Below, in pieces: positions 122 to 17,626 of a DNA stretch of 64,000 bases. Position numbers and translations under genes: made by a program. Source of the DNA: Utricularia gibba. Taxonomy: Eukaryota; Plantae; Magnoliophyta. The stretch spans positions 1,984,001 through 2,048,000 of the forward strand of contig NEEC01000017.1 in the NCBI GenBank assembly GCA_002189035.1. Reading direction: 5' to 3'. Each line of letters opens with the position of its first letter. Position 1 is the stretch's first letter. Below the pieces are notes generated by a model that was given only the letters and a program-made list of their open reading frames with translations, was not told the DNA's origin and did not search any database.

Positions 122-1983
122 CTATGAAGATGACATGCTATCTCTCATGCGAGTGATGAGCTTGAATTTCTCCTCAGCTTCGACCTGCTGCCGAATCTCA
201 AGGCGTGATGCTCGGTCGGGGTGGAATGCCAGAAGGGCTTTCTTGTAAGATACCAGGACCTGCAACAAGCAAATTACATATGGCACTCCACTTTCTATCA
301 AAAGCAACCTTGTTTCTTGAGCATCAAAACATAACAGTGAGTAGTAGTTTCAGTAAGATGAAAACTCGAAGACAATGTAATGAACCTGTTGCGGTGATGG
401 TGTCGGCCAACCTGCAACGGAGATCCCTAGTTCGTGCAGCAGAGAAGCCATGTCCTTTTTGCATGCCATCTCAAGCAAAGAGAGTTCCTTCTGAACTTCA
501 GCACGAATTTCCTCTCTCAAGTTAAGAGTTTCCTCTTCCTGAAATATAAATATGCTTGTTTTAAAGCAATATATAATTATTGCCGCATCTAAAGCTATCA
601 GAGTGAATTAGTCGTGAATTCTAAACGTTTGAAAGGACCCTTTAATGGTGAGAACCTTTTTCTGAGAATTCCGAATTTCCTCTACCCGCTCCTTTTGTCT
701 TCTTTCCATGTCCATTAAACGCATAGTCTCAGCCTTCCTTCTCTTGGCTAGCATTCGGAGTTGTTTTGCTTCTTGAGCCTAGAAAAGGAATCAAACACAT
801 TTACATGAAAAATAAACCCACATCCTAGAGTGCACGAAAAAAGAAAACTCATAGGAATTGGGATGCACGAGTTAGTAATATATTCACTAATTGAATGTGC
901 AATGCTCATTAAAAAAGGATAGAGTCAACAGAGCAGAACCTGAACTCTCAGTGCTTCTTGCCGAGCAGCCCATTCTTCCTCCATTGCCATTTTGTATTCA
1001 TCGGTTTCCTTGATCTTTTCACGCTCATGAAAAATAGAGTCCTGTTCTGAAACCAAAGCATCCTTGCACATAATTTGGGTGTTGTCTATTTCGTTGTCCC
1101 ATTGTTTGCTAACCGAAAAGGAAGCAACATTTGTTTCATGCATCTCATCATCATCATTAGTTTGCAGAAATGGCCTAGATTCTGACTGCCCTGGTTCCTG
1201 GGCAACTGCACACGGCTTCACATCAGAATCTGAACCCCTTACTCGATCTGTGGTTCCTGAAGCTCCAGTGGCTTCATTTAAATCACTGGAAAAACAACTA
1301 GGTAATACATCCTCAGACAGAGGAGATTCCACATCAGAAGAAGGCTTGTTGATATCCAAAAACTGATCTTCTCCCACAGCACACCTAGAGTTATCAACCC
1401 CATCATTAACTGGTGGACTGATGCTGTTAAACCCCGATTCACAATGACCAGTATCCAACTTAGCACTTGAAGAAAAGCCTTTCGTCCACTTCTCTTGAAT
1501 CTTCCCAGAAGAATCCTCAAAAATTTCACAGCAACAAAAATCAGATGGAATGTTTTCTAGGCCAATATCTAAACCGTGTACGTCTCCAAAAGAAGCATTG
1601 GATGAATAGGTACGCTTGCACTTGGATAATCTCACTGGTGTTACATTATCCTTGACAAATTGGGCTTTAGCAGAAGTATTTGAAGGACCCTCGAAATGCA
1701 TACCTAGGTGGCCAGATTCTGCCCTCGAAGAAGTACCCGTGTTTTCATCAGCATCATCATCATCAATATGTATGACATTCACGTACCGCCTTCTCTTAAC
1801 TTTAGGGACATCGATGATAACAACTTGCTCATCATAAGCTTCTTCATCAACATCTATAAGTATCACATGTTCGGATCCCTCACGAATGAGATGCCTACTA
1901 AACCCTCTCCGTGTAGAGCAGGGTCTGGAAGAAGGATGATCCAGAGATACTTCACTCATTGCAACTGAAAGAGAATCAGGCAA
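122..1983 (-). CDS. Uncharacterised plant protein with disordered acidic N-terminus, coiled-coil and C-terminal J-domain-like (HPD) segment; 4 coding exons (approx. 1983-940, 778-654, 538-388, 259-122)
   Basis: 352-aa ORF ends at a CAG|GT donor (940). Downstream AG/GT-bounded exons read AQEAKQLRMLAKRRKAE..., EEETLNLREEIRAEVQKEL... and VLVSYKKALLAFHPDRASRLEIRQQVEAEEKFKLI...stop. Confidence 0.8.
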
Positions 1984-2571
1984 TAGCTACCTAAAAAGGA
2001 AATTTAGGAGAAGCGATTAGACATAAATATGGCCCCAGTTAAGTAGCAACAAACGAAACCACCTGGGACAAAAGGGGTACCATCATATGCTTGTCCTAAC
2101 ACAAAAATACGCTTTGAACTCGTAAAATCCTCTGAAATGTCAGCTGCGATCCACCCTGAACAAAAAAAAATATTATTTGAAACTTTCACAATACCAACAT
2201 ACAAAAACTCAAATTATCAGCAAAGTAAAGGTTGATACCGAGCAAAATCCAGCACACAGACATAACACATGAAAAATAAGCACAGAATAACACACGAAAA
2301 CAAAGAAACCCCATGTAAGAAGCGAGATGAAAAACCCTAAAAAGAATTACGATCACACACGCATATTAGCAATACCGAGATCAAAATTTCAAGAAAAAAA
2401 ACAGCATCATTGGACATGTAGGAACACAAACCCCTCTGATCGTGAAGAGCCCAGAAAAAAACTACGAAGAATGACGACGAACGGCTACAAAATCAAATGT
2501 CAAAATGCTATCTTTACTGCCGTTGCGAGGGAGCCAGGGAGGTGAGAGAAACTTGTTAGCGGAATCACAAT

Positions 2572-2666
2572 TGGGCCTTCCCGCCACATGCCCAAGAGTG
2601 AAAGTCATCAACATAATTGGGCCCTCACTCCAACGATCGGCCCAGTGTATGTGGGGCCCGTGGGCC
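2572..2666. promoter_or_regulatory. Cluster of site II (TGGGCY) elements upstream of the minus-strand J-domain-like gene
   Basis: TGGGCC at 2572, 2618 and 2661, and GGCCCA at about 2639, just beyond the putative 5' UTR exon. Confidence 0.55.
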
Positions 2667-5378
2667 GCCATAATCTTACAATATCAGTAATAATTCCGAC
2701 AAATATACGGCGAAAATTGCGCAGAACAAATAATTAAGGTCCAGAATATATTAATTAATTTACCGAAAATTTGTGAACACGCGGCAAGGGGGGCCCCTCT
2801 CTATTAATGATGCCCGAATCTTATTTTCTGGAAATAAAATCTCATAATTGTCTCTGGAATTTAATTTCATGTGGTGTTGGTAGATGGTTTGGTTGACCTA
2901 CTTATTTCAATCCACTGCTATTTCCATTTTTTCATACTTAATTTCCACTAATTAGTAAATATTTTATCCAAAAGTTACTGATCCATCTATAAATACCAAT
3001 GTGAGGTTTTGTCACTAGTGAAATATCTCAGTGACAGAAGATATACTTAAATAAAGTATCATTCCAATTTTGTATTATACATTTTCCTTAGAAGTGGATA
3101 AACTTTTTGTGAAATGGTAAAATATAAAATCATAAAAATTAGATACACAAAACATATAATATCGTACAAAATGAATATGAGTCATAATATATGGTATATA
3201 TGTATATACAAAAAACCATAAAATCATAAATGTTTGTATGGTATAACGTTTTGATATGCTCGATACTAATATAAATAATATTAATTTATACAAAAAGTAT
3301 TGATTTTAAAAATATAAATATGTTTAAGAGAATATTATGAAAAAATTACTGATAAAAGTACAAGGTCAAAAAGCTAATGACATTATTCTATATTGTTTAC
3401 GAATGAAATAAATGACATGCTTAAATAGAATTAAGCTTATTATCTTGTATTAGTCTTTCTTTTTTGGAATGGAATAATGTGTAAAGTCATGATAATTTAA
3501 TGTTCAAAACAAATAATATCATATGAGAATAATATTGCTTATGACATTGATATAATGTTTCATAATTTAATTTATATATAATATTATTGAAACATACAGA
3601 ATACATAGTCATAATAAAAACTTTATTGAAATGTAAAGAATAATATTATATTTTATGATTATGAGATTCATTAAACTATATTTTATTATAAATGAAATAT
3701 TAAATAAAATAATTGAGTAGATATTTAATATATAAAACAATTTTTAATATAATGACAAACGAGCTCTCGGATTAAATTAAACCTAAATAATTTATAAAAT
3801 AATTGTTATTTGATTTTAAATGGAGGAAAAAAAAGGGAATAATTTCAAAGAAAAATGAAAACGAACATTAAATTCCAAAGCGCTGTCTGGTCATAAATAG
3901 GAGCGGTCTCTGTCTGTGTGTAAGTAAATGTATGTATATCCTCAACTTCATCTTCACCTGTGCGTTCAATGCGAAGTCAAAACGTTTTCAATCGGCCAAC
4001 GGGGACTCGTACCCGAAGCCTCTACGTTGGAACGGGAAAAATTTATGGCCTTTCTTGGGCAGCCATAAATTTTGCAACGCAAATGGAGCTCACAAAAAAC
4101 CTTCTCTCTCTTTCAACTCTCCATTTGCTAATGTGTAGCCGGCGTGAGTTGTGTCTGTCGCTGAATATGAATACACTTTTGTGGGTGTAAGGCATTTCCC
4201 ACTTCCCTTTTGGATCTCCTTTCTTGGATGTGGCTATCGTCTTTCCACTGTTTGGTTCACAGAAGTTTCTGGGTTTCGCTTTTTTATTGAAGATTTTGGT
4301 TCTCGTCAGAGGGAAAGGGGGAGAGTTTGCAGAAGAAAAGGTGATTCAGTTTTCTCAATTTATCTTTAGTGGATGATGTTTGCTATACTATATGCTTTCC
4401 TTGTTCTGTCGAGGAACTGTGCTTTTAGGGATCCGATCAAATCGTTTCTATTTGCCTCGATTACGTTTTTCCTTCTCAACAAGTTCTAATCTTTTTTAAG
4501 TAGATCTAGAAGATAGGGGTGTTAAGCCTGTTTTTGTGACATGGGATGCACGAAATCCGAGAAAGGGGGTTACCCATGATGTGGAACAGAGGCAAAGGAC
4601 AAATGAACCGGATCAATCAAAGAGTATATAGGTTAAAAAAGAGTGCACTTTATGCTGTAGATGTTTAGCGGTTTGTTTGGAAAGGGGTGGCATGTTCTTG
4701 TCTTCTTCCTTCAAACATTGGACAAAAGAAAATTCTCGTGCCACTGTTTTTTGTTCTTACATTCTTTCATGTGTGCAGACCTGGTTTTTACCCACCAAAC
4801 ATTAGCAAGTATATTTTTATCGCCATCATTGGTAGACCTCCCGGGTATTCCAAACTCGCGTCTTGTTTACTATTTGGTGCTTCTGTTTAAGAGAATTATC
4901 ACTGGATTACCGGTTGGTTTGCCCCCTTTTTCTGTGTGGCTCGTGTTGCTGTTGTGTTGTCTCTCTGTTGATGATGCAACTGGGTAGAGAAGTTCCTTTT
5001 GAGTTTGAAAATGGGCTCACTGTTGAAAAGTAAAATCTGTAGATAGCAGATGTAAAAGAACATCTCTTTTCATGATCCCTTTACTCTCTACAGAAGCATG
5101 CCTATGTTTTTGAAACTCATGCTTGCCTTGCCTTTATGCCTGAAGGTGCTGATTCATTCCCGGAGATAATTCTCATACTCTCATCCCAGTGAATGTCCAC
5201 CTCACAACTCCTGCAGATTCTGCCCTCTCTCCCGAGAGATGTGAAGCAAAATTCAAGGTAATTATCTTCTGTTTCGATGTTTTGGTGTGATGACTGTGAC
5301 TGTTTATTTTACATTCTCAAGATTTACTCTCTGGATCATAACAGCAGCATCTACGATCCTGCTGAACAAGACACCAGG

Positions 5379-8965: not shown

Positions 8966-10882
8966 ATGTCTCGGAAGTTCGATAGCCCTGTACAGACTGA
9001 GATGGCTGTTGCTGTTTTAAAGAATCCACTTAGCACCGGGGATTACCCTGGATCCAGCAGGTTTGAAGGCAAACCGACTGGTAGAAGAAGAGTTTTTGTA
9101 CAAACTGAGACAGGCTGTGTTTTGGGTATGGAATTGGACAGGAATGACAATGCTCATATGGTGAAGAGGAGATTGCAGGTTGCTCTGAATTTCCCTATTG
9201 AGGAGAGTTCGCTGACTTTTGGTGATATGGTTCTGAAAAACGATCTTCGTGCCATTCGGAATGATTCTCCTCTCCTATTGACTAGGAATTTGATCCATAG
9301 AAGCTCTTCAACTCCCTGTCTGTCACCCACAGGCCGGGACATCCAGCAGAGAGATGAGAGTGGCCCGATTGAGATATTAGGACATTTGAAACACATTTCC
9401 AAGACAAAGAAGCTGGTCAAGGAAATTGTCAAGGCAGTGAAGAATGGAATTGATCCTATTCCAGTTCATAGTGGGCTTGGGGGTGCATATTATTTCCGAA
9501 ACATCAGAGGAGAAAGTGTAGCAATCGTGAAGCCTACAGATGAGGAGCCTTTTGCACCGAATAACCCAAAGGGCTTTGTTGGTAAAGCTCTTGGGCAGCC
9601 TGGCTTGAAACGATCTGTGAGAGTTGGGGAAACAGGTTACAGAGAGGTGGCTGCTTATCTGCTTGACTACGACCATTTTGCTAATGTCCCCCCGACTGCA
9701 CTTGTGAAGATAACTCACCCAATCTTCAATGTGAATGGTGGTGTGAATGGAATTATGACTCAGGATAAGAATTTGTGCAGCAAGATTGCCTCCTTGCAGC
9801 AGTTCATCCCCCATGATTTTGATGCCAGTGACCATGGAACATCAAGTTTCCCTGTTGCAGCTGTTCATCGAATTGGAATCTTGGATATCAGGATCCTTAA
9901 CACAGATCGGCATGCAGGTAACCTTTTGGTGAGGAAGCTCGACGGTGTAGGGCAGTTTGGTCAAGTGGAACTGATCCCGATTGATCATGGTCTTTGCTTG
10001 CCTGAGAGTTTGGAGGATCCTTATTTTGAGTGGATCCATTGGCCTCAGGCTTCAATCCCATTCTCGGATGATGAGCTGGAGTACATTGCCAACCTTGATC
10101 CTAGTCGCGATGCAGAAATGCTGTGCTCTGAGCTTCCCATGATCCGTGATGCTTGTCTCCGAGTCTTGTTCCTCTGCACGACATTCCTGAAGGAAGCTGC
10201 TTCCTCTGGGCTTTGCCTTGCTGAAATCGGTGAAATGATGAGCCGAGAGTTTCGAAACGGTGAAGAGGAACCCAGTGAACTGGAGCTAGTATGCATTGAG
10301 GCAAAAAGACTGGTTGCCGAGGAGAAGCATCATCTTAAGCATGGGTCTGATTTGGAGGACTTCCAATTTGACATCGACTGTGAAGCTGATTCTTCTCACT
10401 CCAACGGAAATCCTCCTCCTCCTCCACCTCAAATCCTTTTCTCGGGATACAACTTCCATGTCAGCTCCAATGGAAGTGTCACTGGTCGTAATCCTCTTTT
10501 CAAACTGGAGGAAGAGGAGGAGGAGAACAAAGAAGCCAAAGAAGCGAAAGGCATAATGTGTGCTCTGCTTCAACCAAAGATCCCTGCCGTTTCAAAACTC
10601 TCCATGTCCCTGAAGAACACTAGCTTAGGTGAGATGAAGCATAAACAACAACACTCCTATGGAAATAAGCCCGATTCCGGGTCTTCCTCGGGACACAGGA
10701 GCGCCAACGACCCACTCCCCCCCAGCACCACCTTCGTGAAGCTGACGGACATGAGCGAAGACGAATGGGGGCTGTTTTTGGACAAGTTTGTTGATCTCCT
10801 CGCCCCGGCATTCGCCAAGCGCAAGGCTGCAACCGTCGGCCAGAAGCAACGACAGAGGCTTGGGACTTCTTGCAGGTTTTGA
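8966..10882 (+). CDS. Type II phosphatidylinositol 4-kinase gamma (PI4K-gamma5/6/7 clade), single coding exon, 638 aa
   Basis: N-terminal ubiquitin-like segment (RRRVFVQTETGCVLGMELDR), GLGGAYYF, KPTDEEPFAPNNPKG, DIRILNTDRHAGN, PIDHGLCLPE and C-terminal RLGTSCRF. Confidence 0.95.
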   Translation: MSRKFDSPVQTEMAVAVLKNPLSTGDYPGSSRFEGKPTGRRRVFVQTETGCVLGMELDRNDNAHMVKRRLQVALNFPIEESSLTFGDMVLKNDLRAIRNDSPLLLTRNLIHRSSSTPCLSPTGRDIQQRDESGPIEILGHLKHISKTKKLVKEIVKAVKNGIDPIPVHSGLGGAYYFRNIRGESVAIVKPTDEEPFAPNNPKGFVGKALGQPGLKRSVRVGETGYREVAAYLLDYDHFANVPPTALVKITHPIFNVNGGVNGIMTQDKNLCSKIASLQQFIPHDFDASDHGTSSFPVAAVHRIGILDIRILNTDRHAGNLLVRKLDGVGQFGQVELIPIDHGLCLPESLEDPYFEWIHWPQASIPFSDDELEYIANLDPSRDAEMLCSELPMIRDACLRVLFLCTTFLKEAASSGLCLAEIGEMMSREFRNGEEEPSELELVCIEAKRLVAEEKHHLKHGSDLEDFQFDIDCEADSSHSNGNPPPPPPQILFSGYNFHVSSNGSVTGRNPLFKLEEEEEENKEAKEAKGIMCALLQPKIPAVSKLSMSLKNTSLGEMKHKQQHSYGNKPDSGSSSGHRSANDPLPPSTTFVKLTDMSEDEWGLFLDKFVDLLAPAFAKRKAATVGQKQRQRLGTSCRF

Positions 10883-11363
10883 TCATCCCATGATGGACTA
10901 AGCTAGAGAGAAGCATCCTAGTTACTACAGTGCTACTACCCGCCTACGCTATCGACGGAAATGAAATAAGATCTGCAGCAGGTTTGTTGAGTGACGGTTG
11001 GTTTGTAGTTAGTTGTAGACGTGTGGGTATGTGTTGCTCCCTCCCCTGGAGTTGACTTAGTTTGTAAAAACAACAAAAAAGGAAAAACTTCACCCCCAGT
11101 TATTATGTGTAAATATTCTTTCGTTCTTCCCTGAAGGTTTTTCATCAGGTTTCTCTTGTGTGCAAAGACTACCATGAAGCGCATGATGATGCGGTTGACA
11201 TAGGAGGTGGAGCCACGTCCCTGAGTCGAGTGGGTGCGGGGTTTTAAAACTTGGAGTAAAGAGATGGGGTGCAAGTGTTGGTTCAGGTGGGGTCGGGTCT
11301 GTTCTTGTGTGCTTGTCATGTCACAATCGCCGCCGCGCCGGAGTGCTGGGTGGTGGTGGTGAT

Positions 11364-12271
11364 TAGAGGTGGGTTCGGTTCGAATCGGAACCGCGGTTTC
11401 GGTTCGGTTCCAAGAGATGGATGTCTGTACGGTTCCAATTCCGGAACATGGTTCCGAACCGAAACCATCGGTTCTGAACCGAAAAAAATTAAAAAAAAAT
11501 TAAAAAAATTAAAAAATTAAAAAAATAAATAAATGTATATGATTTCATACATCCATGGAAGTGGACGTCTCTTAAGGATGTGGGTGTCTGGAAAATGATC
11601 TCAGAAACACCTTTTCACAAACATCCACATCCTTAAGAGACGTGAAATATGTGATGTTAATTTTGAAAATGCAATGTATTTAATACTTCTAATATTTTGT
11701 TTTCAAAATATATGAAATAGATGTTGTTTTATTTTAATTTGAAAAATACATAATACTTATAAAAGATTATATAAAACAACCATATAAACATCTTCATTTT
11801 AAAAAAATAAATATATAAATAATAATTCTATTCATTTTATATGATTTGTAATCTTGTTGTATTTGTTTTTAAAAATTTAATTTTATCAAATATATATTCA
11901 AATATTAATAATTTAATTATTTATTTTATTTATTTAAGTCATAAATTATATTGATTTTAATTATATTTTATTGAGATAGTATATCAAATAATTTAAGTTA
12001 TAGTTTTTTATAAATTAATATAGTATATTACATAATATATCTAGTTAAATACAAAAATTAATATTATTAAATATATTATTTGATAATATTTAAATATAAA
12101 AAATAATTATTATTACAAATTTCATTACCATACACCCACAATGATTCATATGGGTGCCTGGAAAATACCTATAAACAGTAACCGATCGGTTTCGGTTACG
12201 GTTCGGTTCCCGAATCTCGGTTCCGGTTCCGAACCCCGAAACCGTACGATTCTGAACCGAACCCAGCTGTA
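11364..12271. mobile_element. Non-autonomous hAT-type DNA transposon (908 bp)
   Basis: Left end TAGAGGTGGGTTCGGTTCGAATCG versus reverse complement of right end TACAGCTGGGTTCGGTTCAGAATCG; 8-bp flanks GTGGTGAT / ATGGTGAT (7/8); dense AACCG/CGGTT subterminal repeats; AT-rich non-coding interior. Confidence 0.85.
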
Positions 12272-12369
12272 ATGGTGATGGGGTTTCTATTTAATTCAGG
12301 GTGAGCCAAATCCCAAGATTGCTTTATAAGTAGGCCTTCGTGAGAACTGAGGGGCTGGATCATATTCTT

Positions 12370-12512
12370 AGCCCAACCCAGGTTAATGAGCCCTTTAACT
12401 GGATCTCGATACAGAGGTGATGGGCCTTCATTTGCATAGCCCAATAGCACTGACGAATCTTCATATCAACACGGAGTAGCAACTGGCAAATCAGTTCTCC
12501 CGGAAGCCCTAG
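12370..12512 (+). promoter_or_regulatory. Site II elements plus a telobox-like motif, putative promoter of the snoRNA cluster
   Basis: AGCCCA at 12370 and 12438, TGGGCC at 12421, AAGCCCTAG at 12504 (telobox AAACCCTAR with one mismatch). This motif combination is typical of plant snoRNA and ribosome-biogenesis promoters. Confidence 0.5.
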
Positions 12513-12813
12513 CTGCTTTCCGAAGAAACCTTGCTGCGGAACTCTATGGATTCATGCTTGATTTCACGCATCCGTTGTTTTAGCGAGATTTTGGGTTTCT
12601 GGTAGTGGATGGATTTATTAATGTTATTTTTCTTTATATACTCGGGAGCAATGCTGCACCGAATAAGCCCTTCGCAGCTGTGAAGAGAGTATGGGGTTTA
12701 TGTCGATTTGGTCCTTAAATTTTATGGCTGGTAGATAAGGCCAAAAGTTGTTGGAATTGCCGCAAATTTGCCTGCCTAAATGTTTTTTTTTTTTTTCAAT
12801 TTCGGAGGTGACT

Positions 12814-12893
12814 AGCAAAATGATGAGAACTGGGTGGCTGAACTCCAATGTGGAATCTTTTCCAATAATGGCCTTCAAAGTTCTCTGATTGCT
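12814..12893 (+). ncRNA. Box C/D snoRNA, copy 1, predicted guide for 25S rRNA 2'-O-methylation
   Basis: Terminal stem AGCAA/TTGCT; C box ATGATGA at 12820-12826; internal CTGA (D'); D box CTGA at 12885-12888 preceded by GGCCTTCAAAGTTCT, complementary to the 25S segment AGAACUUUGAAGGCC (recalled). Confidence 0.85.
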
Positions 12894-12940
12894 GACTTTA
12901 TTTCTTGGATCATTGTATATACATTTTTCAGAGGTGACAC

Positions 12941-13021
12941 GCAAATTGATGAGAACTGAGTATCTGAATTCCAGTGCTGAATCTTTCACTCCAATAATGG
13001 TCTTCAAAGTTCTCTGATTGC
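12941..13021 (+). ncRNA. Box C/D snoRNA, copy 2 (tandem paralog)
   Basis: Terminal stem GCAA/TTGC; C box TTGATGA at 12946-12952; D' CTGA; C'-like TGCTGA; D box CTGA at 13014-13017 preceded by GGTCTTCAAAGTTCT (the C>T change keeps a G-U pair). Confidence 0.85.
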
Positions 13022-13654
13022 CGTCTTTGTTTTCTGGGTATTGCATCCTTACATCAAATTCCTTGCTTTTTTTAGTTGGCTTGCATTTCCCTCTATGTCG
13101 GATTTCATGTTTGGAATCCCAGTAGCCAGGCAGAGGAGCAGCTCGAAGCAATGCATTCTGCTCATACACATATTCTGCTGGATGTAGTCAAGCTGAATCT
13201 CTCTAGAGACACAGGCACAGGCACCATTTTGGAATTCCATCTTGTGCTGTTTTGCTGAATCTAGTGAAGCGTAACCAGTCAGTGTCTTGGAATTTTTGTT
13301 GTGGTTCTTATTTAACCCAACAGAGCCACCATTCTGAAGTAGTTGCCTCATCAGTAGCAACCCCCAGGGCTTCCTTCCATAGGCATCTTCTTCTACTCAT
13401 AGGGGCTGGAAAAACGCACTGTTCTTCTTGTTTTGCACCACTCTTCGTAGTCCCTAAAGATGTTGGTGTGGGCCATACAAGCCTGGTACTACATTGATTC
13501 ACTGCTCCTCTTATGGTGCTACACGAAGACACAACTGAGTTTTCAAGGCCTTGTCTTTTTGTTCAGTGTTACTGCCCGCAATGTTCAAGAGAATTTTCAA
13601 TGCTTTGGACTGTTTTAGGCTTGATCGGTTTTTGGTGATTTTTTCGACCGTTTT

Positions 13655-13681
13655 TAATAATAATAATAATAATAATAATAA
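13655..13681. repeat. (TAA)n microsatellite, about 9 units
   Basis: Direct reading of taataataa... at 13655-13681. Confidence 0.9.
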
Positions 13682-14206
13682 TATAAAATCGATTAAACGG
13701 TTCTAATAAATAAAATGGATTTAATTGAAAGATTATTCTAGTTTAAATTTGTGTTTAAAATCGATTAAATGGAGCGTTTTTCTCATGAATTTTTTTAATT
13801 TGATTTTCGTAATTTTTAATTTAGATAATATTATATTTTTAATAATTATTTTAATTTTTGTAATATTTTTAGAATGTATTTAATTTGATTTATTGAACAT
13901 GATTTTAGAAGGAATATATGTTGAATTTTAAAAAAATCAACAAAATCGAAATCCAATCGTGTTAGAATAGAGTGATCATTCTTCGAATAGTCATAGAATA
14001 ATAGAATTAATTACTGGAACATTGGAAACCACAGAGGGTCGCCCCTTGACAACAGTGCACTTGCTCATGGTTGACCAAGCTTGCCTTTTTGAGATCCAAC
14101 TGCTCTGCGTGATGCATCTTACTGTTTAAGAGACACCCATTGATGCCTCTGTCCATAATCTTGGCTGTTGGATTTTCAAGAAGTAAGGTTTCTCCATTGA
14201 ACGGCG

Positions 14207-15903
14207 ATGAGTTTACTTCTGTGGGTGAATTCGGTTGACTGGGAGGAGGAATCCTATCCGCAGTACCAGGATTTCGCGTTGCTGCCCTTTTTCGCTTTCT
14301 TCTTCCCCACATTTCGGTTTGTGCTTGACAGATTCGTCTTTGAGGTGCATTTTTGTTTTGAATATCTGGGGTTTTTTTTTTGAGTGTGATTTGTTATGAT
14401 TTTGTAGTTCATGGCTTGATGGGGTCCGATTTGTAGTTTGGGGATGTGGTCATTTGATGGGTATTTGTAGTTTACTGTAAATACTGAGCCTTTATGAATG
14501 TTTTTATGATCCCTGCGTTATCTTTTTGCTGGTCAGCAACATTATTAGCTCTGTATCCTCAGGTTGGCACCATTTTTCAGAAATTTCCAGCGTTTATTAT
14601 TATCTTTTCCATGGGTTCTTGAATAAAGAAATTAATGTACCCCACTGCTGCTGATTTCTTATCCAGTCTTTCTAAGTTGAAATATTTATGAGCTTCAACA
14701 AACTCCATATATTTAATGCCTCTACATGCATATAACGTGCTGCAGACAGTAGGAAGGAAGCTCTTGTATGGATGGGGAAACAAAGTGGCTGATAATGAAG
14801 AAGTGCAAAGCAGAAAGCTAATGAAGCTCAAGGAGTCAGCTTGGAAATGCGTGTATTATCTATCCGCTGAAATTCTAGGTCTTGTGGTTACATACAACGA
14901 GCCCTGGTTCAGGAAAACCATATACTTTTGGGTTGGACCCGGAAACCAGGTCTGGCCTGAACAGAAGTGCAAGTGAGACTTCATTTCCTTCTTCTTGTTG
15001 AAGTTTTTGTTATGTTCGGCTGCGATACCTTTTTTGTTTCTGAACTTATGCTTAAGATTCTGCTTGATGATGGATTTGGATGTCATTCACCAGGCTGAAA
15101 CTGAAGGGACTGTACATGTATACTGGTGGATTTTATTTGTACTCCATCTTTGCTCTTATCTTCTGGGAAACAAGACGATCAGACTTCGGGGTTTCGATGG
15201 GCCACCATGTTGCAACCTTGACCCTCATAGTGTTATCGTACTTATTTAGGTGCCCTTCCAAAAAAGAAACCATCTTCAATTCTGTCATGAATCTCTATCA
15301 AGCCTTCTTCATACTTTATGTTTCTGCAGATTTGCCCGTGTTGGTTCAGTTGTCTTGGCTCTGCACGATGCCAGCGATGTGTTTCTTGAAGTTAGCAAGA
15401 TGTCAAAATACAGTGGAGCTGAAGTTACGGCTAGCTTTGCATTTGTACTCTTCGTGTTATCTTGGATCATCCTTCGTCTCATATATTACCCCTTCTGGAT
15501 ACTCTGGAGCACCAGGTGCGCTCTGAATGTGCTTTTCAACCACATCTTAAGCAATGTATCCACGACTGAATGGTGTTTTTACCTAAAAAATGCAGCTATG
15601 AAGTTCTTCAAACACTAGACAAGCAGAAACACAGTGTGGATGGGCCAATCTATTACTACATTTTCAACTTCCTTCTCTTCAGCTTGCTTGTGCTTCACAT
15701 ATACTGGTGGATCTTAATGTACCGGATGCTCGTCAGGCAAGTACAACAACGAGGCCGGGTCAGCGATGATGTTCGATCCGGTAAGCAAAACCATCAAAGC
15801 AGAGCGTGCATTTCACCATCATTTTGCAGTACAGGTTCGGCTTCTGAATGGCTTCACTTTGTTGCTTGCAGATTCGGAGGACGAAGGCGAGCATGAAGAC
15901 TGA
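14207..15903 (+). CDS. LOH1: Ceramide synthase, LAG1/LOH1-LOH3 type; 6 exons (14207-14344, 14746-14972, 15094-15249, 15330-15515, 15596-15780, 15872-15903)
   Basis: Spliced product has [49 protein letters not shown] (Lag1 motif) and ends [11 protein letters not shown]; all junctions GT-AG. LOH1 versus LOH3 orthology is not resolved. Confidence 0.95.
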
Positions 15904-17626
15904 AAGGAGGAAGCGTTGTTCATTGAGTGACAAACAGAGCAAGAGCACCATTCTTTTGTCCCAAGTACAAGACTACTCTACCTCTTGTTGTACATTCTAC
16001 ATTATAACTTTTAGTGACCTGCCATTCCATAGCCTTTGATCTTCTTCTCGATATATTCAAAGGATCGGATTTTCGAAATGTCAATTTCTTCATACTCCTA
16101 AAGAACAATCTCATCATGGTGTCGAGAGAATGAGCTTGCTGCTTCATGGATACTTAACTGGTTTGGTCCCCCTGCCCACAAACTAGAAGGGGAAATAAGC
16201 CTTAAATGAGAAAGTACTCGAGTGGTCACGATTAGGATAACCTTCTTCATGTCCCCCACAAAAAAAAACATCTTTTCTTAGAAATGAAAAGAAACAAAGT
16301 TGGCTATAGCACATTAGCGTGCACAGACAGAGGGCTGTGGAGCACTTCCTATGTCGTCATCTTCCTAGGAAAACGGAAATATCGGATTCAGTTTATAATA
16401 TCTATACATAATTTATCCATTCGGTTTCCAGATAGGGTAGGATATCAACACAGCTTAAGAACAAGTTGATTCATATGGTGGGGGTGATTCTTTGAGAAGG
16501 TGAAGAACAACAAAACGTATCATGCATGTTTCTCTTTAGTGATACGGTCTATGTTTTTTTGGGGTGAAATTTTGTTGGGTGGAGAGTGACAGAGGAAGAA
16601 ACAGACAAGCTAACGTCTTGTCTTGAGCTGTCCCTGAAGTTGTATTTTGCTATCATCTTTAGTTTTCTTCTACTTGATAGTGCGTACTGGGAATATTTTT
16701 TGTGAGTAATTGCGATCAAATATCTTCAAACTTCAATGTTATGGTTTATCGAGTCAAGGTCTTGGGTAAAAAATCGCATCTTTATGAAAATTTATGGCGT
16801 CGCGATCAACGATTCCCCATTCAAGAAAAAGGTTATCATCTTCAATCTTGGGGTTGACGGTACAAAAGGAAACAATTGAATCACATAAATAGAAAATCAG
16901 GAACAGTGATTTCGTTCAAATTTGTAAACTTTCGTCTGTAATCAGAAGAGGGCCTCCCTTTTCCATTAATTGCGCTGGCTGTTGTTGAGTCCCCACCCCA
17001 CTAGGAACTAGAAAGCAGCGTATCATCTGGGGGTCACTGCTTTTTCGCTCACATATATATGTGTGATGTATCGGGACACCCCTTTCTATCTTCCTTTCTT
17101 CAGCCTTTCGTTTTTCGTTAGTTGATTATTTGGGTGTTCTTGTTTGTGCTTAATAGCAAGAACATTACAGAATCTGGGACGTTTTCGAATCCTCGATTGT
17201 GTTAAATGTTATGAAATTGTGTCATTTGTGTTCTTGCTTTTGTTTTCTGGTAATCTTTACTCCGATTATGTCTCTGTTTCTGGTTTTTTGTTCTTCGATA
17301 TCATAATGGCGATTTCTTTTGTTGACTTTTTCCGAGTAGGCTACTCTCCGCTGCTGCAGGGGCTAAGTTTCTTCTCTGATCACAGAAGACTTTCTCAGGT
17401 ACATCGCTGTTCCACCGGTTTATGCGCTTTTTCTTGCATCTGGATTGGTGGGGTGGATGTTATTCGATGCAAGATCCATCTGATTTCGAAAATTCAGATG
17501 AAATGTCTTGAAAGGACTGAGCATCAGTGACTTGATATGTGGATTTGTTGTGAATTGTATCCAAGGCATGCAATGTGGTGAGATGATTGTTGTTCTTTCC
17601 CTACTCATTTTCAGAAGGGTAGTTAA

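Follow-up and report, generated by a model that had tools for sequence, protein, structure and literature searches.

A tandem pair of snoR160-family box C/D snoRNA units in Utricularia gibba, predicted to guide methylation of a known 25S rRNA cytidine

Introduction

The closest described relative of the units presented here is the Arabidopsis RNA snoR147. AtsnoR147 is an 83-nt box C/D RNA that was cloned from nucleoli and gave a northern signal at the predicted size. Its D guide forms 13 bp with 25S rRNA at Cm1471 (old numbering), a site reported to be unmodified in yeast or human, and its single gene is clustered with the H/ACA RNAs snoR163 and snoR95 (PMC2875012). The origin of snoR147 has been dated to the seed-plant ancestor (PMC5122169). 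The supplement of a RiboMeth-seq study equates Cm1471 with C1479; this position of Arabidopsis 25S is flagged there as Nm, with SnoR147 as its guide and a MethScore of ~0.86 (0.863 in the first sample column) (PMC8053127). Another box C/D guide, U24 (snR24 / SNORD24), acts on the same 25S stretch: its Arabidopsis sites C1447, A1459 and G1460 (PMC8053127) lie 19-32 nt 5' of C1479.

In Rfam, box C/D RNAs of the kind described below form the plant family snoR160 (RF00203). The Arabidopsis RNA called 'snoR160' is, in turn, a 139-nt H/ACA RNA guiding pseudouridylation (PMC2875012, PMC7464842). It has the name alone in common with the Rfam family, is unrelated to it and should not be confused with it.

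Here, we describe two neighbouring box C/D units in a 64,000-nt stretch of Utricularia gibba DNA, hereafter the window. We consider them, with a probability of roughly 0.93, to be tandem paralogues of one known plant C/D snoRNA, that is, Rfam RF00203 snoR160 with the target of Arabidopsis snoR147. The pair is real and probably functional, and results from a lineage-specific tandem duplication.

Results and Discussion

Both units match a curated plant family over their full length

A preliminary description of this locus had recognized two units of ~80 nt, each with a terminal stem, boxes C, D' and D and a 15-nt guide, and this organization was indeed found (Table 1). It had also named an Rfam search as a suitable check. 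At gathering threshold, the whole window yielded exactly two matches, both to RF00203 snoR160, for which the curated gathering score is 42 bits. Copy 1 scores 61.5 bits (E = 2.3e-08, whole window) and copy 2 scores 53 bits (E = 2.7e-06, whole window); in both cases the match covers model positions 1-80 of 80 and is not truncated. Judged by these full-length matches above the cut-off, both units are ordinary members of this curated plant C/D family. Since the matches reach the gathering score, routine Infernal/Rfam annotation would find both units. The pair, initially presented as hidden, is so for a reading based on open reading frames, but not for Rfam annotation.

The family name snoR160 reportedly originates from a rice snoRNA screen. 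The two units agree with the family in length, in the order of their boxes, and in terminal stem and D guide (consensus GGUCUUCAAAGUUCU + CUGA). Apart from standing here as two tandem copies, they show no essential difference: what varies is the spacer between C and D' and the loop, as is the case among all members.

Table 1. Coordinates of the two units, their elements, the surrounding features in the window and the sub-threshold units in metagenome contigs (contig:positions)
Feature	Position	Strand	Remarks
snoRNA copy 1, box C/D, 80 nt	12814-12893	+	sequence and full-length RF00203 match
Copy 1 terminal stem, 5' arm AGCAA	12814-12818	+	pairs with 12889-12893 (TTGCT), 5/5
Copy 1 box C ATGATGA	12820-12826	+	sequence, Rfam match
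Copy 1 D' spacer GAACTGGGTGG and D' box	12827-12841	+	D' CTGA at 12838-12841
Copy 1 C' box TGTGGA	12849-12854	+	degenerate; sequence
Copy 1 D guide GGCCTTCAAAGTTCT, 15 nt	12870-12884	+	complement of Arabidopsis 25S
Copy 1 box D CTGA	12885-12888	+	
Copy 1 terminal stem, 3' arm TTGCT	12889-12893	+	follows box D
snoRNA copy 2, box C/D, 83 nt	12940-13022	+	sequence and full-length RF00203 match
Copy 2 terminal stem, 5' arm CGCAA and 3' arm TTGCC	13018-13022 (3' arm)	+	4/5 pairs
Copy 2 box C TTGATGA	12946-12952	+	first position not a purine
Copy 2 D' box CTGA	12964-12967	+	sequence
Copy 2 C' box TGCTGA	12975-12980	+	degenerate; sequence
Copy 2 D guide GGTCTTCAAAGTTCT, 15 nt	12999-13013	+	one G-U with target
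Copy 2 box D CTGA	13014-13017	+	sequence
Intronless ORF, PI3/PI4-kinase domain	8966-10882	+	upstream neighbour
AT-rich insert	~11400-12260		bounded by CGGTTCGGTTCC / GGAACCGAACCG-type repeats
Three Site II motifs (TGGGCY)	12370-12443		within 74 bp, ~370-440 bp upstream of copy 1
TATATA, TATA-box-like	12635-12640	+	between Site II cluster and copy 1
181-aa ORF	12624-13169	-	GTG start, bacterial table; judged spurious
TLC-domain gene (TRAM/LAG1/CLN8; LAG1/ceramide-synthase-like)	14207 (ATG) to 15896	+	1.2 kb downstream
Sub-threshold C/D units	L003:622-705, L008:891-972, L025:848-930, L047:19-105, L061:1753-1838		
Sub-threshold C/D units	L001:9074-9162, L062:1854-1942, L037:148-235		seven similar units besides L001:9074-9162
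Sub-threshold array	L060:6773-7916		five tandem copies

Both copies carry box C near the 5' end and box D near the 3' end, brought together by a terminal stem that is complete in copy 1 (5/5 pairs) and nearly so in copy 2 (4/5). The element complementary to Arabidopsis 25S is 15 nt long and lies directly beside box D, where the C/D class has an antisense element of at least 10 nt. As for the internal boxes, D' is CTGA in both copies and C' is degenerate; among angiosperm-like homologues, D' is conserved as TCTGAA and the C' region as ATGt.GAt. Copy 2 departs from the canonical form at two points, as its outer stem pair is a C-C mismatch and its box C starts with U instead of a purine, and may be the weaker copy for these two reasons.

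The guide fits a mapped 2'-O-methylated cytidine of 25S rRNA

The target sequence was taken, nucleotide by nucleotide, from a supplementary table in PMC8053127, in which Arabidopsis 25S runs G1474 A1475 G1476 A1477 A1478 C1479 UUUGAAGGCCGAAG, the bases 3' of C1479 being U U U G A A G G C C G A A G. Against this sequence, all 15 bases of the copy 1 guide form Watson-Crick pairs with positions 1475-1489 (G1474..C1489 region, AGAACUUUGAAGGCC). The guide of copy 2 differs from that of copy 1 by a single C>T, which turns one G-C pair into G-U. Counting five bases back from box D leads to G12880 in copy 1 and to G13009 in copy 2. By the D-box rule, both pick C1479, which is exactly 19 nt 3' of the U24-guided G1460 (Gm1460) and corresponds, by our own count, to about C1469 in yeast numbering. 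The preliminary description had anticipated each of these points: a perfect copy 1 guide, a tolerated G-U in copy 2, these very guanines at the D-box minus 5 position, the C of GAGAA-C-UUUG as the target, and a distance of about 19 nt from the U24 Gm site. That C is the one mapped by RiboMeth-seq (PMC8053127). The proposal that the guide fits an already mapped 2'-O-methylated cytidine is thus supported by base pairing, and the equivalent C would, by analogy, be methylated in this species.

The comparison with snoR147 points in the same direction. Both are box C/D RNAs whose D guide leads to the same 25S cytidine by the fifth-base rule, and snoR147 has the length of copy 2. Homology between Rfam snoR160 and AtsnoR147 is argued from size, class and identical target, not from an alignment. 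The arrangement differs, since Arabidopsis has one gene beside snoR163 and snoR95, whereas a tandem pair is present here. U24, on the other hand, has other guides and other target bases, and the two units do not match the U24 family.

The D' spacer of copy 1 (GAACTGGGTGG) is not conserved among the aligned homologues. Since this spacer is variable and SnoR147 has only the one site in Table 1 of PMC8053127, D' is treated as having no conserved target.

Established C/D snoRNP biology suggests how the units would act. Each RNA would be excised from a longer Pol II transcript, and boxes C and D, joined by the 5-bp terminal stem, would form a kink-turn able to recruit a 15.5K/Snu13-type protein, Nop56, Nop58 and fibrillarin. 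The 15-nt guide before box D would then pair with 25S rRNA at AGAAC-UUUGAAGGCC, placing the counterpart of Arabidopsis C1479 opposite the fifth guide base from box D, and fibrillarin would methylate the 2'-OH of this C. By analogy with the described relatives, we infer that both RNAs are expressed and processed in this species. As the family, its target site and the methylation there have all been published (PMC2875012, PMC8053127), the pair adds nothing new on mechanism.

A check of the target that is independent of these papers came from a viral collection, in which a 20-mer around the target site is present in two contigs (L065 and L066). In the former, a segment of 389 nt (L065:4115-4503) matches Rfam LSU_rRNA_eukarya at 324.6 bits and contains the rRNA target string given in the preliminary description, with the U24 target string and the C1479-type site in the expected order. 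These 389 nt span model positions 1179-3401, most of the model being skipped, and the rRNA-like sequence ends soon after the target site. The second contig also carries a eukaryotic LSU rRNA fragment (L066:4181-4200). Such rRNA fragments likely reflect a chimeric or contaminated contig.

The RNA bodies are conserved between species and their terminal stem covaries

To look at relatives of the two units, metagenome contigs were scanned with a pattern consisting of TGATGA, 35-65 nt and the last 12 guide bases followed by CTGA, for which a rough back-of-envelope estimate gives a few hits by chance. The scan returned 84 units, 51 of them distinct, in 64 contigs. The angiosperm-like units among them match Rfam snoR160 at 52-79 bits. 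Homologous units are 77-83 nt long, and their length differences are not multiples of three. An alignment was built from 43 units, leaving out eight doubtful pattern hits (L005, L006, L014, L015, L054, L055, L057 and L059) as well as L018 and the first copy of L021, whose stem register is shifted. Columns forced by the pattern are invariant in this alignment and carry no weight; this applies to TGATGA, which is invariant but was demanded by the scan.

Across the 43 homologues, 94.9% of the terminal-stem cells are paired, and all five pairs show compensatory changes on both sides, with variants such as AGCAA/TTGCT, TTCGG/CCGAA, AAGGA/TCCTT, AGCAG/CTGCT and GTCAG/CTGAC, among others. None of 500 shuffles reached the observed pairing or covariation, and slid stem registers of the same alignment were just 20-54% paired.

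When positions 11000-15500 of the window were compared with all loci by blastn, the only aligned parts were 12812-12893 and 12935-13035. Between species, then, the RNA bodies alone are conserved within 11000-15500. A tblastn search with the coding pieces next to the pair matched none of the 64 loci, and no synteny was found.

Angiosperm-like loci usually hold two to six copies (two in each of L002, L009 and L029, six in L030). In view of these copy numbers at related loci, a multi-copy arrangement is normal for the snoR160 family.

Each copy has the other as its nearest relative

A repeat search gave a start-to-start spacing of 126 nt in the 5' part of the units and of 129 nt in the 3' part; the single spacing of 127 bp originally put forward holds as an approximation and is replaced by these two values. 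A local duplication of ~126-129 bp made the pair, both copies having kept all functional elements. When the pattern-forced columns are set aside, identity between the copies is 77%, and no other unit exceeds 66% with either of them. They are each other's nearest relatives among the aligned units, and the duplication is therefore lineage-specific.

Within the 80-nt body, the copies differ by 11 substitutions and one 3-nt indel. These changes are unevenly placed: boxes D' and D have none, box C has one and the guide one in 15 positions, whereas three of the 11 nt of the C-to-D' spacer have changed, the same contrast of diverged spacer and conserved remainder that had been noticed beforehand. In the 32 nt after the 3' stem, 17 positions differ. 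The low level of change in boxes and guide, compared with this 3' spacer, points to maintenance of both copies. In this lineage, the plant guide for 25S Cm1479 is present in duplicate, and constraint apparently acts on either copy.

A decayed third copy upstream was also considered and rejected, as its local alignment score of 24 was not significant against shuffles (mean 17.6, maximum 25). The resemblance involves 12341-12360, similar to the part from box C to D', and 12421-12436, similar to the guide. Within 12333-12436, GGCCTTC...TGAGAACTGAGGGGCTGGAT and ATGGGCCTTCATTTG are faintly like the guide and the box C-to-D' part, and one of the three Site II motifs (12421-12426) falls inside this resemblance.

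Alternative readings of the locus

The minus strand of the region could be taken to encode a 181-aa protein, with the snoRNA-like motifs being incidental: the frame is open across both units, and both repeat periods, 126 and 129 nt, are divisible by three. The frame, however, begins with GTG under the bacterial table, yet lies in a plant nuclear context (its first ATG would leave ~139 aa), and a Pfam search assigned it to no Pfam family. Substitutions between the copies are distributed over its codon positions 1/2/3 as 11/7/12, with no third-position excess. Moreover, 18 of the 19 orthologous angiosperm-like units, taken with 40-nt flanks, have stops in all three antisense frames; the length differences of orthologues are not multiples of three, and a gap-free invariant run of 22 nt ends exactly at the RNA boundaries. 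It is this positive evidence, namely codon positions and stops in orthologues, and not an absence of relatives, on which the frame is rejected. The 181-aa ORF is an accident of this sequence and is spurious, as the preliminary description had already maintained; a coding role is extremely improbable and is refuted for practical purposes. For annotation, the value of the locus lies in two snoRNA genes where an ORF caller sees a 181-aa protein.

Even more improbable, indeed negligibly so, is that short box motifs co-occur by chance in AT-rich intergenic DNA. Box C and box D are brief sequences, and CTGA is a frequent one, but the whole-window Rfam E-values of both copies, a 15-nt rRNA complement exactly beside box D, cross-species conservation limited to the units and a covarying stem led us to reject it. 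A reading of one or both copies as decaying snoRNA pseudogenes, the guide being supplied by another locus, is less improbable, though still unlikely. In copy 2, box C reads TTGATGA and not RTGATGA, the stem has 4/5 pairs and the Rfam score is the lower one (53 bits), and Arabidopsis manages with a single gene (PMC2875012). Against decay, neither copy has lost a box (C, D' or D) or any part of the guide, while the 3' spacer has diverged at 17/32 positions, suggesting selection; both copies are above the gathering score; TTGATGA also occurs in two aligned units of another locus (L060c and L060d); and related loci are as a rule multi-copy. Two maintained members of one known snoRNA family therefore remain our preferred explanation of the pair.

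Genomic context and possible transcripts

In plants, Site II motifs and the Telo-box mark promoters of polycistronic snoRNA genes, for which TATA variants are also listed (PMC4660826). The Site II cluster and the TATATA upstream of copy 1 (Table 1) make a possible promoter of a snoRNA transcript. Elsewhere in the window there are several further Site II clusters. No exact Telo-box (AAACCCTA) was found near the locus, and the one-mismatch form AAGCCCTA at 12504 is at chance level. Since the Site II motifs are not accompanied by an exact Telo-box, this promoter reading is a weak one. Just upstream of the putative promoter region, the AT-rich block looks like a transposon or MITE insertion. It contains an 87-nt near-perfect hairpin (11561-11647) with sub-threshold miRNA-family matches on both strands.

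Another source of the transcript is suggested by splice-like signals around the units. Each unit is preceded by AG/GTGAC, which resembles a 5' splice site (12804-12812 and 12930-12938), and followed by a pyrimidine-rich stretch ending in AG (12920-12931 and 13063-13076). Given this arrangement, the units could lie in an intron, for example a 5'-UTR intron of the downstream TLC gene, or in two mini-introns made by the duplication. The TLC domain of this gene was found in two ORF pieces searched separately (15080-15523 and 15570-15893).

A permissive Rfam search of 9000-17000 revealed no third snoRNA, its other matches being sub-threshold miRNA-like ones at 11561-11647. Folding z-scores of the flanks are +1.34 (12540-12805), -0.73 (13030-13330) and +1.69 (13330-13640), and give no sign of an H/ACA partner like Arabidopsis snoR163 or snoR95. 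Thus, compared with the snoR147 cluster, the locus here has neither another Rfam snoRNA nor a significantly structured flank. A sigma-70/terminator scan, irrelevant for a plant locus, gave nothing of note.

Sub-threshold units with the same guide

Besides the angiosperm-like units, the metagenome scan uncovered contig groups whose units stay below the Rfam snoR160 threshold but have box C, the same D guide with box D, and a 5-bp stem with compensatory changes that keeps the same register (Table 1). These are an AT-rich group with the stem TTCGG/CCGAA, another with AAGGA/TCCTT, and GC-rich arrays such as the one in L060. The guides of these units extend as AGUCUUC, which fits a GAAGACU variant of the rRNA and not the plant GAAGGCC.

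These units lie outside the window and are the one mildly new point of this work, hinting at a range wider than the seed-plant origin given in PMC5122169. That the guide family is much older and wider than described, reaching beyond seed plants, has in our view somewhat less than an even chance, as judged from box, guide and stem similarity. Should the contigs in question stem from bryophytes, algae or other protists, this C would have been methylated already in the ancestor of a far larger clade, and yeast and human would have lost the modification.

Among the angiosperm-like loci, some snoR160-family arrays far exceed the pair in the window in size: six copies occupy ~3.2 kb in one contig (L030:312-3478), and the same arrangement is seen in another (L046).
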